Shown here piece after piece: positions 36,777 to 56,970 of a stretch of DNA of 64,000 nucleotides. The position numbers and the translations under genes were made by a program. Within the stretch, counting starts at the first letter, position 1, and each line of letters starts with the position of its first letter. The notes beneath the pieces are model-generated. The model searched no databases, was not told where the DNA came from, and saw nothing but the letters and a program-made list of their open reading frames with translations. The DNA is from Hyphochytrium catenoides (taxonomy: Eukaryota > Protista > Hyphochytriomycota): assembly GCA_900088475.1 (NCBI GenBank), contig FLMG01001670.1:89849-153848 (forward strand). Direction: 5' to 3'.

Positions 36777-38931
36777 CTAGAGTCTACTGCAATACCCTTG
36801 CTCCATCAAAGCCTCAGGATAAATGGAGTACCATCCTGTAACCAAGTCGCGATACAGTTCTGGCTTGTGAGCCGCAAATGCGGCCGGGTCTTCAGCGAAG
36901 CACACGAAGATGGTGTGCACAGCTGATGTAACTATGGAGAAGAAAATTGCCGACATGGCTTCATAGGTGGGCACACAGAGCCGAGAAACGGGAAAAGATA
37001 CAAAGAGTTTGCGAGAACCAATCGTTAGTAACAAGCGCCATCTCGGGTCAAGATCTTGTCCATGCTTACCAACGCCGACAAAGAAGCCTGCGATTCCAAG
37101 AACAACCATTGAAGTTCCTGTAGTTGCGTAATTCGTGGCGCCAATTAAAGCACCAGCAAGGCCCAGTGTGCAGCCAATAGCCAGGGAAAACATCATTAAG
37201 ACGTTCGTCACCAGGTTGTCATTGATAATAGCAGTCCAGCCGCGAGCTTTGAAGAGATGGATGACGGACTTGCATGCCTCTGTGTAGCTCATTCCATATA
37301 TACCTGGGAAAGAATTGGACAGCTAACCGGTTAGCACCCGAGTTGCTTAGAGGATGCTAAATGCTGTACACATGTTTAGTGGGAAAGATTATAGAGACCA
37401 TGATGGCACATTGTCACCGCCGGAAGAGGAGAAGATGCTTCAATGGCAGAACGAGTGCACCATGAAAGAATATGATCGCTGAGCAGAGCCAGTTATGATA
37501 CTAGTGCGAAACGGTAAGAGATGAGGTCTTACCAACATATACGAAGCCCCATTGGTTCAAAAATTCTACGACGCTCTCAATGCAGCTTAGAAGACACTGC
37601 GCCAAGCACGCAAAGATCAGCCCCACCACTAAAGAATCGTGCGATGAGGTAGCAAAGAGGAAGAGATTGTTAGCCAATGTGAGCGTTCCTTTTGAAACCC
37701 TTTTAGGTATACCGTCACGATCTTCTTGACTCTGGCGCTGCGCTTGTATAGCAATTTGGCGCAAGGTCTCAATGACAGCCACTACTAAAGAGCCACTGAA
37801 GAGGTGCCCGAGATGAGCTCAGCTCCATTTTTAAGACTAGGCACCGCAAGGCAGATAGGACAGCAACACATACAATACGTACAAAGCAGCATCAACGCGG
37901 ATGTAGAATTGATAAATGCAACAACACACTTACAAGGCAACAGAGCCCAATGACGTTGTGCAAGCTCTCAGGAGTGCTCCCAGCGAGGAGCCCGACTTGT
38001 TGTTGTACCAGTATGACGCCACAGCCCCCGCCACCGTGACAGTGTTCAGATTCTTGATAGTAAAGGCGCCGAAGTAGAAAGACAAAAGTAGACAGAAGAA
38101 AGTCACACCCTGAGTAGACCCCATGTTATCGTCGTCATCTCCTCGCTCGCGGCGCTCATTGTTCTGCAACCGCTGGAAGACTCCAATAACGGCCACCATC
38201 CAGACGACAGCAAATAAAAACTGCGTAATCTGGATTCCAAGCGCTACGACGTACAGTCCCCAATTGTCCCTAAGTGCTGCACAGGCAACCCTGGAACTGT
38301 GGTTAGGAGGTGGTCGTCATGAGCTTAAGTTCACATCTAACGAGACTTACTTCAGATTAACGCTTGCAAAGGCAATTCGATCTTGAACGGCTCGCATGAA
38401 GCAGTAGGATAGACCTGACATCAGAAGAAACACGACTCCTACAAGGACGGACTGAACCATGGCCAGAAGACCCAAGACAAAGAACCAAAGTATCTGGAAC
38501 CATAGCCCAATCCGAATCATGTTCTCGGCATTCCTTATCATTAGCACGACGCTGAAGACTGAGAGGATGCAAGCGGCTCCAGAGAGTCCAGCAATGGCTA
38601 TCAGCTCATGAGTTGAAATAGGGCTCGGCTCACTAGCCCGCTCTCTCTGAGACTTCTGCGCCTCATTGATAGCAGGGATGCCCCATAACACTGCTAGTAC
38701 TCCCATGACCACGAGGTTGGCGACAAACAGGACTGCGAAGAAGGGGTCTCTGAAAGGAGGAAGTAACCATGAGTAGGCATCTGAAGTGGCTCAGAAAGGC
38801 TATACTTGGGGTCACCTGCATCCGGACGAAGCTACACGAGGCTTGATCGCCTCCACATGTGAGACAGTGTATCCTGGAGGATCTGCAGAGTCGAACGTCC
38901 GTCCTCCCACATTTTTTTTTGAGACATCCAT
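36777..38931 (-). CDS. Choline transporter-like protein (CTL/SLC44, PNS1-like), paralog 2
   Basis: GCR-DPFFAVLF, DRIAFASVNL, VTVAGAVASYWY, RACTTSLGSVAFGSL, NQWGFVYVG-IYGMSYTEACKSVIHLFKARGWTAIINDNLV, AVHTIFVCFAEDP. Several intron positions are shared with paralog 1. Confidence 0.9.
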
Positions 38932-41900: not shown

Positions 41901-42802
41901 CAGCTAAATATTGAAGAGCAGCTGGAGGTTTACTGTATTTTGACAAATCGAAGGGGTGGGTAGGCGAATGGTGTTTCGGAACCCGAAGGATGACGGACGT
42001 GAGGAGGACAAGAGGAAAAAAATGAACGCTTTCGTAACGGCTTTGTGGGTTCTTGGTTCTCATGTCCATAGATAATGTTAGGCCTCCGTGCAATGATGAA
42101 ACCCTTCTGATTCTGTATGTGCCTGCGACAGGACATCATCAACCTTCTTTCCCTTTCTCAGATGTCTCTCTTAGCCCTTACTCGCCTTCTTATCTTTCCC
42201 GCTGTAGGGAGACAGAGCTGTCAACAGAGAGTCTAAAGAGAGGGAAAGAAAAAGACGAGAAGGGATCCAGAGAAGAGACTGTGAGCACAAAGATTGGAGG
42301 GAGAAAAATGGACCAAGACTGAAAAAAGTGGGAAAGGTCAAAGGTCAAACAAAGGGTCAAAGCAGCTCCAAGGTCCCAAGGCACATGAATAGTACAGAGA
42401 GCGAGAGCAAGAAGAGCCATGTAGAGAGGACAAGAAGGAGGGATGAATGAGGCTGGAGAACGGGTGGGGAACGTTCCAAACAGCCCTCAATATGAGAGAG
42501 AGGCAGCTGGAAGAGATAGCTACAGTTACTATGACCTCTGGTCGTAGACCTTCTGCCGACATACACAGCGGCTGTGAAGAGGAGGTGGAGCAAGGGAGCT
42601 TCCACAGGCTAGATGAGGACAAAGAGGAAGGTTTTTATAAGAGGGTGGAAAGATAAACTGGCGTCACTTTTTCTGTTCCTTGCTAGTGCCCGCGCCGTCA
42701 GGAGCTTCTGTCAGCAGCGCAATACTTTCACCCTTGGCGCCACAGCTCAAGAATTGTTATCGCTTGTAGGCCTTGTTATCGCAAGGTTGTCCATAATCAG
42801 CA

Positions 42803-44212
42803 ATGGGTGCCACATGCTCTAAGCCAGAGGCAACAACTGTTGAACAGCAGCCCGTGAAGGATGTTCCAGAGACCGCTGAGACTGTAAAGGAAGGTGCTGT
42901 GGTGGTTGTAGAGGAGAATCCCGCGGAGGACACCCCTGCCACGACTGAAGAGAAAGCTGCAGAATCCACAGAGAAGACTGAAGAACCAGTAGCCACGGCC
43001 GACGAGGAGGCTCATATCGCGGAGGAGGCAGCCGCGCCAGATGCAGCTCCTCGCAAGAGTTCTGTAAGGGATTTCTTCAAGAACCTAGTTCCAGCGAAGA
43101 AGGAGAAGGCTGCAAGCGAGGAGAAGCCTGCTGAAGAGGCCGCAGTTTCCTTTGAAACTGCTCCAGAAACTGAGAAACCCGCGGATGAGGTCAATCAGCC
43201 TGCGGAAGTCGCTGAAGCTCCTGCCGAAGAAGCTGAAAAGTCGACCGAGGCGGTGGAAGCACCAACCGAGGAAGCTGAAAAGCCTACGGCAGAAGCCGTA
43301 GAGGTACCTTCCCAAGAAGCGGAAAAGCCGGCAGAGGAGAATCAACAGCCTACGGAGGAGAAGACTGCCGTCGAGGAAGCGCCAGCTGAGGGCAGGAAGA
43401 GTGTAAGGGAGTTTTTCAAGAAAATGATCCCTACCAAGAAGGAAAAAGAGGCTGAGAAGGCGGCAGACCAAGTTCCAGCAGCATCTAAGCCTGAAGAAGA
43501 CACAACACCTGCGGTCGAAGCCCCTGCTACTGAAGTAGCTGCTGCCCCCGCTACTGAAGAAGTGGCTGCTGTCCCCGCTACCGAAGTGGCTGAAGCCCCT
43601 GCTGCCGAAGAAGAGAAGACTTCAGAAGAGGTTCCTGCTGCAGCAGAGGCAGCAGAGGAGAGAAAGTCAGGAGTGAAGGATTTCTTCAAGAAGATTGTTC
43701 CTCACAAGAAGGAGAAGGTTGAAACTGCTGTAACAGAAGCTCCATCCGCTGAGGCAGAGCCCGCTGAGGCACCAGCTCCTGTTGCAGAAGAGACCCCAGC
43801 GGTCGAAACTGCAGCCCCTGATGCGTCAGCTACGGAAACTCCAGAGCACACTGATGAACCTCGAAAGTCTTCTGTAAGAAACTTCTTCAAGAAGATTATC
43901 CCCGCCAAGAAGGAGAAGGAAGAGGCCAAGGAAGTTGCACAAGAGCAAGCTCCAGCTACCGAGGAGGCGCCTGTCGCAGCAGCTGAGGAAGCCGCTGCTG
44001 CCCCTGTCGTTGAAGAGGCACCCGCAGCAGTCCCTACTCTTGAGGAAGCTCCTGTGGCTTTAGTGGAGGAAGCTGCAGCCCCTGTGGAGGTGGAGCCTGC
44101 TGAAGAGCCCAAGGCAGAAGAGGAGGCTGTAGCGAAGGAGGAAGAGGCCGTACTCGAGAAGTCAGCAGCGGAACCAGCCGCTGAGGCCCCTAAGGACACT
44201 GTTGTTGCCTAA
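42803..44212 (+). CDS. Intronless N-myristoylated/palmitoylated Glu/Ala/Pro-rich disordered protein with four basic-aromatic repeats
   Basis: 469-aa ORF with an MGATCSK N-terminus. Repeats RKSSVRDFFKNLVPAKKEK, RKSVREFFKKMIPTKKEK, RKSGVKDFFKKIVPHKKEK and RKSSVRNFFKKIIPAKKEK are conserved in protein with synonymous DNA divergence. Confidence 0.85.
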   Translation: MGATCSKPEATTVEQQPVKDVPETAETVKEGAVVVVEENPAEDTPATTEEKAAESTEKTEEPVATADEEAHIAEEAAAPDAAPRKSSVRDFFKNLVPAKKEKAASEEKPAEEAAVSFETAPETEKPADEVNQPAEVAEAPAEEAEKSTEAVEAPTEEAEKPTAEAVEVPSQEAEKPAEENQQPTEEKTAVEEAPAEGRKSVREFFKKMIPTKKEKEAEKAADQVPAASKPEEDTTPAVEAPATEVAAAPATEEVAAVPATEVAEAPAAEEEKTSEEVPAAAEAAEERKSGVKDFFKKIVPHKKEKVETAVTEAPSAEAEPAEAPAPVAEETPAVETAAPDASATETPEHTDEPRKSSVRNFFKKIIPAKKEKEEAKEVAQEQAPATEEAPVAAAEEAAAAPVVEEAPAAVPTLEEAPVALVEEAAAPVEVEPAEEPKAEEEAVAKEEEAVLEKSAAEPAAEAPKDTVVA

Positions 44213-44433
44213 TTCACCCGCTACCAGGTTTATTTAGCTCTTATCTATAGTAGTAGCTCCTCTCTCTATCCATAGTTAGAACTGGCCCCGCTCTACCTTC
44301 GAAAGCGAGCCCAACGACGACACTATTGTAAAGTTTCTCTTAAATCTGAATGTCTTTTTTTCTATTCCTCTCCCGGCACTACTTCTACAGGCAAGTGAAG
44401 CTTTATTTCTGCACTCTTGAACACAAGAGGTGC

Positions 44434-44488
44434 ACTAGTTCTACTGGCGAAGAGAGACATTACTAGTTCTACTGGCAAAAGAGAAAGC
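44434..44488. repeat. Imperfect tandem direct repeat, about 28 bp x2 (actagttctactggc core)
   Basis: actagttctactggcgaagagagacatt followed by actagttctactggcaaaagagaaagc. Confidence 0.7.
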
Positions 44489-45176
44489 AACCTAAGGCAG
44501 ACCGAGCGCGGGGAGTTTGCCATGTACCTACCTACCTTCTGTACCCCTAGGATGTTTGCGGTTCCTCAACTCCATGGAGCTTCATTCTAAGCAACCTTAT
44601 TACAGGATATTCCTCTTCCTTTAGCCGAAGGGCTGAGATTGCACTGCTGCTGCACCGTTTGTCGATTATCTGCTGAAGCTTTGAGGACGGAGAAGAAGTG
44701 GAGAGATCCATCCAACAACTGCTGATAGTGCATGCACTTATTTGAAGATCCTCATTGCTCATTGGGAAAAGTCAGAATATATGGGTTCTAAATAAAGACG
44801 TTATCTATGACGGATAGTATCCCCTTTATTCTTCGGGATTCTTGATAGTCCGCACTCGTTCTTCCCTCGTCCCCTCTTCGGATTTTCAAAATTTACCAGC
44901 GCTGTCATGAGTCCCTCAACAAGTCCGTCCTCATCAGTCTTCAGCGCCAACATGATGCCCAGCGGTCTGCTCTTGGCTGAACCTCCCGCCATATGCTGCC
45001 ATTCTTGAGCTTGCCAGATGGCTGAACAGGGTAGTACTCTATCTCATTCAATCAATCTCTGTCCTCTCATTCGCTTTCGGATCAAGATATAAGGAGGAAA
45101 GCGAGCGAACGTCGCACCTCTTGAGCACAAAAGCTCTGAAGGTCGATCAGCGATCATTGTTGGAGATAAGGATAAT

Positions 45177-45854
45177 ATGGGCGCGATCAAGGCATCACGA
45201 AAGCAGGGAGTGGATAAGGAGTTCTCCTACATCGCAAGATTTGTTAAAGATGGAGAGATCCGCTTTGGAAAGGATGAAAAGTCAGCCACCATCTACCGAG
45301 CTATACACGCAGGCCAGGAAATCTGCTCCGGTGGTTTGGAACTCGAAAGCTTGCAGGAAATGTTAGAGCTACTCAACGCTCAGCTCAAGCGCTTCTACGT
45401 TGAGCTTGGAGAAGCCTTGGAGGAAGAGACAGAAGATGAAGAGGATGATGAAGAAGAGGATGATGAAGATGGGGACGAAGGCTCTGATCAAGACGATGAG
45501 GACGGCGATAGTGACGAGGAGGTTGAGGAGGAAGTCGAAACCAGAGAGGAAATTGAGATTATTGATGACGAGGAAGAGGAAGAGGATGACGATGAGGACG
45601 ATAAGGGAGAAGATACTGATGACGAGGAGGATCAAGAAGAAGCCGAGGACACTGCCCAAATCGTGATAGATGATGATGACGAAGAGGACGAAGAGGATGA
45701 AGAAGAAGACGAGCAGGAGGACGAGGACGAAGACGAAGACGAGCAGGAAGAGAACGGGCTCGATGAAGAGGATTTAGAAGTAAACGATGAGGAAGAAGCA
45801 CTAGAAGAGGTAACGTCACTCACTGATTTGTTCCAATGGAGAGACATAAACTAA
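45177..45854 (+). CDS. Small protein: about 80-aa helical N-terminal domain plus a long Asp/Glu-rich tail with SIM-like motifs
   Basis: 225-aa intronless ORF. The tail is roughly 70% D/E by manual count and contains IEIIDDEEE and IVIDDDDEE. Confidence 0.75.
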   Translation: MGAIKASRKQGVDKEFSYIARFVKDGEIRFGKDEKSATIYRAIHAGQEICSGGLELESLQEMLELLNAQLKRFYVELGEALEEETEDEEDDEEEDDEDGDEGSDQDDEDGDSDEEVEEEVETREEIEIIDDEEEEEDDDEDDKGEDTDDEEDQEEAEDTAQIVIDDDDEEDEEDEEEDEQEDEDEDEDEQEENGLDEEDLEVNDEEEALEEVTSLTDLFQWRDIN

Positions 45855-48600: not shown

Positions 48601-49362
48601 CTTTACCTCTAACCGCGTACTCAGGTCCTTGAACAAGAGACAGTCCCGGTGGTCTATCAAGGGGCAGCAGCGTCGGTGTCTAGCTGGTTCTTAGTGCCTC
48701 CTCCCTATATCCTTCGTCTCCGTGTCTCGCTATGATCTAGCTGACCTTGCCACCTACTGCTAGCACTCTTCTTCCTACTTATCGCCCTCCCTCGTCTCGC
48801 CTTGAAGCCTCTTCCCTCTTATCTCTCCCAGCTCTTTAAGGCTTGTCCCTATCATACTTCTCAACTCTATCTGCTTGCTCTCCTCCTCTCCCTCACATCT
48901 CGGCTATCTGCTGATCAGAACTTGACGTGTCAAGATGGCGTTACGGCCGGAGATCTGTAGGTGTCATACTTTGAACGAGGAATCGGGCAAATTCTTATTC
49001 ATCTCTTAGGAAGGGCGTTACCCGCTAAGATTCTTGATGATGTTTCTGCTTGGATGTTATGGACATTGAAGCAGCAGCCAATGCGGTCTTCATGGTGAGA
49101 AGGTCTTAAAGCTTACAGTGCTAGGACGAAGAGCTTCAGGGCAGCTAATAGCTCCACACAGGTAGCACGCTATCTAGATAGAAGGGAGGTCAAGCTAGAA
49201 GGAAGACGGATGAGAAGAAGGTGAACTGGAGACCTCAGGTGTGATGAGTCGATAGTAAAGAGAAAAGAGTGCCGGGGAAAGATGAGCCCTCTGTCAGAAG
49301 GAAGAGATCAACTAGCGGCTTAGAGTGTTGAGAAGCGCAAGAGTCAGCATGGCTCAACCGAG

Positions 49363-49418
49363 NNNNNNNNNNNNNNNNNNNNNNNNNNNNNNNNNNNNNN
49401 NNNNNNNNNNNNNNNNNN
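49363..49418. other. Assembly gap (56 N), intergenic
   Basis: Run of N between panE and TMEM184. Confidence 0.95.
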
Positions 49419-49726
49419 GCTCGTGCATACACGCATGCCCCCTTCGGAGGTAACAGCACCAAGAAGGTCTTTGGATCTGTGTCGAAGAGAGAGGGAGATA
49501 CCCCTTTATTGGAGGCCTTACATAGAGTCTTTACCATTAGATGTTGGACCCAACAGCCTACTTCGAGAGCTCTCATATATAATGGCTTCTCTTCTGTACT
49601 TACAGAAAGCGTCACTGATATCCCATGAGTCACAGTCTCTTTGAAGTTGCTCCCTTTGGCAGCAGGATCTCTTCGACTGTTGATGTCTCTTCTGGCAATC
49701 TCCCTCTGTTCCCCTCGTGCCATCCT

Positions 49727-55689: not shown

Positions 55690-56970
55690 ATGGGTCTCGC
55701 AGTCAGTCAACCTTCGGTCCCCGGTCCAAAGAGAAGCGTGGTTGTCGTTGGCGGGGGATACGCAGGGGTAGCCATTAGCCAGGAGTTGGAAAGGCAAGGG
55801 TTTCAGGTCACGCTCATTGAAAAGAAAGACTATTTCCTTCATTCTGTCGGATCTCTGCGAGCTGTTTATCACATTGGTTGGGAGAACAAGGTCGTCATTC
55901 CCTATACCAACTTACTGAGGCAAGGAAAGGTGATACAAGGAGAAGTCTTATCTATCCTTCCTGACGAAAAGACGGTGGTGTTCTCAACAAATGCAGGAGA
56001 ATTAGCACCGGCAGGTCACGGGGAGCAAAGGATCGGGTATGATTTCTTAGTGGTTGCCACGGGAAGCCCCGCACCTCCGGCATTTCCTGCTCAACCGCCT
56101 CCATCGGCGCTCCATCGCGAGCAATATATTCAGGCTGTCTCTGCTTACAGAGAGGCAGTGAAAGGCGCAAAGAAGGTGGTGATCATTGGTGGAGGGCCAG
56201 CGGGAGTGGAGTTGGCAGCAGAAATAGCAGAAGGATACGGAGGAGAGAAAGAGCTAACTATTATACACTCTGGAAAGACTCTTCTCAGTAACTCGCTCCC
56301 ACCTCTAACGCCAGAGATGACAACAGCAGCGCTGCAGCGCTTAGCAAAACAAGGCATTAGGGTTCTACTAGAGGAGAAGGTGGACCTGTTAAAGTGGAAC
56401 AGCATAGCAAAAGAAGGAAGCCAAGCCTTAGGACTCTCCTATCACACTGGCCTCACAGTGGTAACCACCTCAAAAGGATCCGAGGTCCAGGCAGACATCG
56501 TCATCAACTGCATTGGGTCAGCGGGTCCTATGAATGGAAAAAGGAGTGCTCCTCCATTCCTTCCTGCTGCTTGGCTAGATGAGCAGCAGAGGGTTCGCGT
56601 CAATAACCATCTTCAGGTGTCATCGGTTACAGAAGGGAATGTCTTTGCCCTGGGAGACGTCACAGCCCTGTTAGAGACAAAGCTCGCCTATTATATCAAG
56701 GAGCAAGTTCCTATAGTGAGCAGAAACATCCTTCTTCTCTCACAAGAGGATGCAGAAGTTCACCGGGACGGGGGCAATTCATTGAGCACCTACAATGTCC
56801 ATGAGAGGGCTACAATGGCGCTGGCCCTAGGGAGTAAAGATGGCCTCCTTCAGGCCAATGGTAAGTACCTTGGCTGCCTGGGCTCGTTCATGATAACCCA
56901 AGCCAAAAGTAAGCAGCTAATGGTCTCGGAGCAGTGGAAAACCTTAGGGTTGTCTGCTCCCTCCTCGTAG
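55690..56970 (+). CDS. AIFM2: FSP1/AIFM2 (AMID)-like NAD(P)H:quinone oxidoreductase, N-myristoylation signal, intronless
   Basis: MGLAVS N-terminus, VVVVGGGYAG, HSVGSLRA, YDFLVVATGS, VVIIGGGPAGVELAAEI, TIIHS, RVRVNNHLQV, VFALGD, KSKQL. Confidence 0.85.
   Translation: MGLAVSQPSVPGPKRSVVVVGGGYAGVAISQELERQGFQVTLIEKKDYFLHSVGSLRAVYHIGWENKVVIPYTNLLRQGKVIQGEVLSILPDEKTVVFSTNAGELAPAGHGEQRIGYDFLVVATGSPAPPAFPAQPPPSALHREQYIQAVSAYREAVKGAKKVVIIGGGPAGVELAAEIAEGYGGEKELTIIHSGKTLLSNSLPPLTPEMTTAALQRLAKQGIRVLLEEKVDLLKWNSIAKEGSQALGLSYHTGLTVVTTSKGSEVQADIVINCIGSAGPMNGKRSAPPFLPAAWLDEQQRVRVNNHLQVSSVTEGNVFALGDVTALLETKLAYYIKEQVPIVSRNILLLSQEDAEVHRDGGNSLSTYNVHERATMALALGSKDGLLQANGKYLGCLGSFMITQAKSKQLMVSEQWKTLGLSAPSS

Follow-up and report, generated by a model that had tools for sequence, protein, structure and literature searches.

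A single-exon gene for an acidic protein with four basic cassettes

The locus described here holds an intact, intron-free ORF at positions 42803–44212 (+) of the window, by which we mean the whole stretch of DNA that was analysed (64,000 nt). No other ORF at the locus comes close to it in length, and its 469 codons and stop translate into a protein starting with MGATCSK (Table 1). The product consists largely of Ala (23%), Glu (23%), Pro (11%), Val (10%) and Lys (9%), and is also rich in Thr. Its 120 acidic residues outnumber the 50 basic ones, giving a net charge of –70. Rarer residues include nine Phe, seven Arg and a single Cys at position 5; neither Trp nor Tyr occurs anywhere in the 469 residues. 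The start codon at 42803 is secure: an in-frame TAA (42794–42796) lies three codons 5′ of it, an upstream scan finds no ATG in 42693–42802, and one 249-nt metatranscriptome contig is colinear with the window over 42693–42941. Three antisense ORFs at 43085–44199 (–), each of 115–165 codons and with a high content of Ser, Ala and Gly, lie opposite the gene. Since the coding strand is GA-rich and of low complexity, these are an expected by-product of its composition and not antisense genes.

Table 1. Features of the gene, in positions of the window
Feature	Position	Strand	Evidence
Minimum 5′ untranslated region	42693–42802	+	Metatranscriptome contigs spanning 42693–42941 colinearly; no ATG; in-frame TAA 42794–42796
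Single-exon CDS: 469 residues + stop, acidic product, predicted disordered	42803–44212	+	Translation; AlphaFold2 mean pLDDT 43
Codons 2–7 GATCSK: N-myristoylation consensus (Gly2, Ser6, Lys7) and candidate palmitoylation Cys5	42806–42823	+	Sequence pattern
Cassette 1: residues 84–102, net +5, predicted helix 88–95	43052–43108	+	Motif scan, alignment, AlphaFold2
Cassette 2: residues 198–215, one residue shorter than the other three, predicted helix 201–208	43394–43447	+	Motif scan, alignment, AlphaFold2
Tandem repeat, 24/27-nt period, in the linker between cassettes 2 and 3	43520–43610	+	Repeat analysis
Cassette 3: residues 287–305, predicted helix 286–298	43661–43717	+	Motif scan, alignment, AlphaFold2
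Cassette 4: residues 354–372, net up to +6, nearest to consensus, predicted helix 358–365	43862–43918	+	Motif scan, alignment, AlphaFold2
Minimum 3′ untranslated region	44213–44321	+	Metatranscriptome contigs spanning 44041–44321 and 44110–44286

N-myristoylation signals follow the pattern rule G-{EDRKHPFYW}-x(2)-[STAGCN]-{P}. At the level of sequence MGATCSK fits this rule, with Ser6 and Lys7 as favourable residues. The position of Cys5 resembles that of the palmitoylated Cys in SH4-type N-termini (PMC2200018, PMC2132482), and the combination of Gly2, Cys5, Ser6 and Lys7 is predicted to be a near-ideal acylation signal.

The chain that follows is interrupted by four basic segments of 18–19 residues, here called cassettes, which contain all seven Arg and eight of the nine Phe of the protein. 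All four open with RKS, a basophilic kinase site, and share the same layout: RKS is followed by a putative amphipathic helix of 9 residues, a Pro break and KKEK. The hydrophobic face of this helix is composed of Val, Phe-Phe and two aliphatic residues (V-x-x-F-F-x-x-aliphatic-aliphatic). Eleven of the 19 positions in the cassette alignment are invariant, namely R, K, V, FFK, P and KKEK. The cassettes are not due to chance: 20,000 shuffles of the protein produced no cassette-like pattern of either half, and four FF dipeptides are observed where 0.16 are expected. Scanning the 64-kb window from end to end in all six frames reveals no copies of the motif beyond the four sites.

The DNA sequences underlying the cassettes have diverged further than the peptide. 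Pairs of cassettes are 70–77% identical and differ by 4–8 synonymous codons per pair; the Arg codon, for instance, reads CGC, AGG, AGA and CGA in the four copies, with the peptide kept. Synonymous divergence together with a kept peptide indicates that the cassettes are old duplicates that have since been under purifying selection on the + frame, which is evidence of coding independent of the RNA contigs described below.

AlphaFold2, run on the single sequence, predicts an intrinsically disordered chain with local helices at the cassettes only. The four helices (Table 1) constitute the entire predicted secondary structure and are of low confidence (pLDDT 54–65). The charge and hydrophobicity profiles single out the same segments: the 12 windows of the protein with the highest helical hydrophobic moment all fall in cassettes, and windows with a net charge of +4 or more occur only there, at +5 to +6. 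The five linkers carry net charges of –13 to –24 apiece, and residues 8–83 have a net charge of about –17.

An earlier note on this DNA, made from the letters alone, had placed the four cassettes at residues 84, 198, 287 and 354 (nt 43052, 43394, 43661 and 43862), and our positions match these exactly. Its reading of MGATCSK as a dual-acylation signal agrees with the myristoylation consensus and the lone Cys at position 5, and its description of an acidic, disordered chain carrying basic amphipathic cassettes is borne out by the charge profile and the structure prediction. It was also right in stating that each cassette begins with a basophilic RKS site and that the cassettes hold nearly all of the aromatic residues.

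Soil transcripts and variants

Besides DNA sequencing runs of the organism, the only runs found to contain the locus are soil metatranscriptomes and one soil metagenome, and there is no indication of an animal source. Logan contigs from four soil RNA libraries, each belonging to a separate study, are placed at 42693–42941, 43213–43361, 43419–43599, 43908–44137 and 44041–44321, and also at 44110–44286. These contigs are 150–281 nt long, have 1–4 differences each and are 98–99% identical to the window. The same four libraries place no contigs in 42000–42692 or in 44322–45560, short low-complexity pieces aside; the only other RNA-library matches are pieces of 33–47 nt in the ORF that follows, on its GAA-rich acidic repeat, and these amount to low-complexity noise. 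As the contigs tile 42693–44321 and the flanks are bare, the gene is very probably transcribed and unspliced, with the proviso that carry-over of DNA into RNA libraries is not strictly excludable. The transcript very probably spans at least 42693–44321 and comes from a strain 98–99% identical to the organism of the window.

Nearly all of the coding sequence covered by the soil variants is linker, the cassettes being barely represented, and the numbers of differences from the window are small: nine non-synonymous substitutions, one synonymous substitution and one in-frame 3-nt deletion. The deletion, at 43556 of the window, falls within the tandem array between cassettes 2 and 3. The excess of non-synonymous over synonymous changes in mostly linker sequence suggests that the linkers drift, yet they appear to keep their composition.

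The variants also bear on a rival explanation of the locus, that of a non-functional or very young low-complexity ORF without a selected function. Such an ORF would explain the low-complexity composition, the presence of frames of 115–165 codons on the opposite strand as well, and the lack of a homologue in any database searched (see below). It is at odds, however, with a frame that stays open for 469 codons, with four cassettes kept despite synonymous change and with RNA-library contigs that are confined to the gene. The soil variants at 98–99% identity likewise keep the frame, even where 3 nt are deleted. We consider a non-functional or very young ORF highly improbable.

Neighbouring genes and searches for relatives

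The next ORF downstream, at 45177–45854 (+), has 225 codons and likewise starts with a Gly2 N-terminus, MGAIKAS, a possible myristoylation signal. Some 80 residues of unremarkable sequence precede an extreme Asp/Glu-rich tail, and Pfam gives no match for this ORF at E values up to 0.001. Upstream of the gene, hydrophobic ORF pieces at 36777–37292 and 38347–38712 (–) resemble exons of a multi-pass membrane protein. The draft assembly has a gap at about 49300–49360, where unknown bases yield 20 X codons in an ORF at 49235–49723 (–). Farther downstream, at 55690–56970 (+), lies an intact single-exon gene for a pyridine-nucleotide-disulphide oxidoreductase of the AIF/NDH-2 type. Its matches mix fungi, plants and protists, and since the best relative in the database is only 34% identical, the lineage must be poorly sampled.

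We searched for relatives of the cassette protein with the whole sequence, with the four cassettes and with a profile built from them. A Pfam scan of the whole protein at E values up to 10 returned only noise, with no MARCKS, BASP1, neuromodulin, DREPP, WH2 or thymosin among the matches. The WSK model (PF03832), comparison with which had been proposed in the earlier note, aligns with residues 205–223 only and scores 8.7 bits (E=2) against a gathering cut-off of 25 bits; the resemblance is not significant. The four cassettes alone gave nothing relevant in Pfam either, with no match to PF02063, PF03832, WH2 or thymosin. The cassette profile matched a single entry among PDB sequences at E values up to 10, a non-significant hit to eRF1 (E 0.53). 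A word-indexed search of 5.8 billion proteins found no match for the whole protein, where low-complexity candidates swamped the query, and none for cassette 4, which yielded one candidate. Neither the whole protein nor cassette 4 produced a usable match in feature searches of the ESM Atlas, and two scans of JGI metagenome contigs, for which the queries were the cassette alignment and the whole protein respectively, gave pattern matches and no relative.

An HMMER search of 1.84 billion protein representatives with the cassette profile found no relative and one borderline match (P0001; E 9.9e-4, 34.8 bits). This sequence has only PRKSSVxxFxKxL in common with the cassettes, and its internal repeats raise its score; we attribute the match to chance. 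It is a 173-residue ORF (136–657) with four Trp/Leu-rich tandem units of ~30–45 residues on an 832-bp contig from a very fragmented NCBI assembly, and looks like a translated satellite repeat unrelated to the cassette protein. As a positive control, the window protein was scored with the same profile at the 1.84-billion database size. Scores were 53–68 bits for single cassettes (E 1e-9 to 1e-14) and 215 bits for the full-length protein; they are somewhat inflated, the profile having been trained on these sequences. The reporting limit of the search is about 35 bits and a score of 34.8 bits corresponds to an E value of about 1e-3, so even one half-conserved cassette would be listed.

An exact-sequence look-up of the cassette protein and two of its neighbours found none of the three in the protein collection. 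Together with the oxidoreductase, whose relatives are at most 34% identical, this implies that essentially no proteins of the organism or its close relatives have been sampled. What can safely be said is that no sampled set contains the motif; a young age of the gene does not follow. To judge from these searches, the motif is undescribed and the protein is without relatives among the sampled proteins. The earlier note had suggested that the motif may be undescribed and had proposed a profile of the four repeats as a check; between them, the profile, the cassettes and the whole protein gave no significant match in Pfam, PDB sequences, the ESM Atlas, the sets of 5.8 and 1.84 billion proteins or the JGI contigs.

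Two known short motifs were compared with the cassettes by inspection and rejected. The RVxF motif of PP1 ligands differs in spacing, the cassettes having VxxF instead, and the FFAT motif requires acidic residues where the cassettes are basic.

Possible functions of the cassettes

The reading that we favour, at somewhat less than even confidence, is that of a lineage-restricted, transcribed gene for a dually acylated, acidic and disordered peripheral membrane protein with four docking cassettes tuned by phosphorylation. Gly2 would be N-myristoylated and the adjacent Cys5 palmitoylated, which would anchor the N-terminus to the cytoplasmic leaflet. The polyanionic chain of 460 residues would be repelled by the acidic membrane surface and form a brush, which may also bind cations, and would be tied back at four points by the cassettes. 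Each cassette, as a short amphipathic helix flanked by RK and KKEK, would bind acidic lipids or a partner protein in a reversible manner, and less tightly once the RKS serine, where the helix begins, is phosphorylated. A palmitate on Cys5 in addition to the myristate would make for a stable anchor, so that a membrane-to-cytosol switch of the MARCKS type is unlikely. The dual lipid would instead keep the protein on the membrane, with the cassettes as secondary contacts that would govern the conformation of the chain, local sequestration of lipids or recruitment of partners. The affinity for lipids may be weak, because the cassettes lie between acidic flanks and carry far less charge than the MARCKS effector domain. 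Acylation, membrane location, binding and phospho-control are all properties that we infer. More doubtful is a further step, by which the cassette would be a new, independently evolved, phospho-regulated linear motif for binding membranes or partners, and the protein a multivalent analogue of MARCKS and AKAP12.

The partner could also be the cytoskeleton. The protein would then be an acylated tether between membrane and cortex, with the cassettes serving as four WH2/thymosin-like sites for actin or, less likely, tubulin. The order of elements in the cassettes is suggestive, with an amphipathic helix of 9 residues leading through Pro-x to KKEK: in thymosin, actobindin, verprolin and villin, LKKxET and LKKEKG hexapeptides that come after a helix serve to bind actin (PMC2132640). 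MARCKS, GAP43 and CAP23, moreover, modulate both PI(4,5)P2 and cortical actin (PMC2175130). However, the Pfam models of WH2 and thymosin do not match at E values up to 10, the PDB sequence search returned no WH2 peptide, and the Leu before KK is missing from all four cassettes, where Ala, Thr or His takes its place. The distance from helix to KK is longer in WH2 domains than in the cassettes, and linkers of 48–95 residues are unlike those of tandem WH2 proteins. In villin, according to later work, only the first Lys of KKEK matters (PMC7525818). We regard the cytoskeletal tether as rather unlikely.

Another candidate partner is Ca2+-calmodulin or a related EF-hand protein, which the cassettes would concentrate or buffer at the membrane, in the manner of GAP43, PCaP1 and MARCKS, and free upon phosphorylation of RKS. 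The cassettes are predicted to form basic amphipathic helices with bulky Phe anchors, and MARCKS, CAP23, GAP43 and PCaP1 all bind calmodulin through basic segments (PMC8457133, PMC6478813). Yet a Pro ends the cassette helix after about 9 residues, and hence none of the canonical anchor spacings is present: inspection reveals neither an IQ motif nor a 1-10, 1-14 or basic 1-5-10 spacing. A calmodulin site is, in our estimation, unlikely.

The protein might not reside at the membrane at all, but act as an acidic nuclear or nucleolar chaperone-like protein with the cassettes as bipartite nuclear localization signals. All four cassettes fit a loose bipartite pattern (two basic residues, a spacer of 11–13 residues, three basic residues in five). 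Nucleolar acidic proteins typically show such an alternation of acidic and basic segments. The MARCKS effector domain itself works as a nuclear localization signal (PMC4607481). This location is hard to reconcile with an N-terminus that has the makings of a near-ideal acylation signal, and four copies with invariant FF and aliphatic residues exceed what conservation of a localization signal needs. We find a nuclear role quite improbable.

If, as in the favoured reading, the cassettes are switchable lipid- or partner-binding modules, the protein would be a clean natural case of convergence on the MARCKS/AKAP12 design outside animals and plants. The combination of lipid anchor, polyanionic brush and cationic tie-down would then have arisen repeatedly across eukaryotes, here in a deep-branching soil protist, and would offer a handle on the organization of cortex and membrane in a lineage nearly missing from protein databases. 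With only 19 residues the binding unit is short; it is also repeated and easily synthesized, which makes its sequence rules dissectable. The stakes are moderate, since animals, plants and kinetoplastids already provide known examples of this design principle.

Comparison with known lipid-anchored acidic proteins

GAP43, MARCKS and BASP1 form a class that is defined by shared design, their primary structures being unrelated (PMC6478813). By sequence and prediction, the cassette protein has the features of this class: a lipidation signal and cationic, aromatic-containing segments within an acidic disordered chain. It would thus belong, by design, with the lipid-anchored acidic proteins that bear cationic effector motifs. 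It is not a family member of MARCKS, AKAP12, BASP1, GAP43, DREPP or WH2 proteins, since every sequence-based comparison with these was negative. The resemblance to MARCKS and AKAP12 is one of design without sequence relationship, in keeping with the convergence proposed in the earlier note. That note had also treated these proteins as vertebrate; taken as a premise about the design this goes too far, given the precedents in plants (PCaP1/DREPP; PMC8457133) and Leishmania (HASPB; PMC3491706).

Plant PCaP1 is an N-myristoylated polybasic protein that binds PIPs and Ca-CaM (PMC8457133). With PCaP2 it provides a non-animal precedent of a hydrophilic, Glu-rich, N-myristoylated protein of the plasma membrane. 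In contrast to the cassette protein, which has no Pfam match to DREPP, PCaP1 carries a single, N-terminal basic cluster and no repeated cassette. [quoted passage not shown] Its repeats, however, are unrelated and lack basic amphipathic cassettes, and HASPB reaches the outer cell surface, of which there is no sign here.

BASP1 (CAP23/NAP22) and GAP43 are likewise lipid-anchored, acidic, disordered membrane proteins rich in Ala, Glu and Pro. Their single basic effector segment adjoins the lipid at the extreme N-terminus, whereas the cassette protein turns acidic after Lys7, has internal and repeated basic motifs and contains no IQ motif. MARCKS and MARCKSL1 are myristoylated and, like the cassette protein, alanine-rich, acidic and unstructured; their N-termini agree with MGATCSK at the consensus positions Gly2, Ser6 and Lys7, and their basic segment contains Phe as well as Ser in a basophilic setting. 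The one effector domain of MARCKS has a net charge of +13 (PMC6521926), as opposed to four cassettes of +5 to +6 with two Phe each, set between acidic flanks. PF02063 did not match the cassette protein, no MARCKS chain was matched in the PDB sequence set, and a second lipid is likely at Cys5, which speaks against on/off control of the myristoyl-electrostatic type.

The multivalent version of the design is AKAP12/SSeCKS, in which an N-myristate and three Phe/Lys-rich polybasic domains that bind PIPs provide membrane retention (PMC4214753). AKAP12/SSeCKS/gravin and the cassette protein have in common a myristoylation signal, a long acidic disordered chain and several separate Phe/Lys-rich basic segments. 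The WSK score, far below its cut-off, speaks for no sequence relationship, and the cassette protein is far smaller, has no recognisable PKA-anchoring helix and carries a candidate palmitoylation site at Cys5. The polybasic patches of AKAP12 are divergent, whereas the cassettes are near-identical copies of one motif. The new elements are the cassette motif, the fact that it is repeated four times and the unsampled protist lineage in which it occurs.
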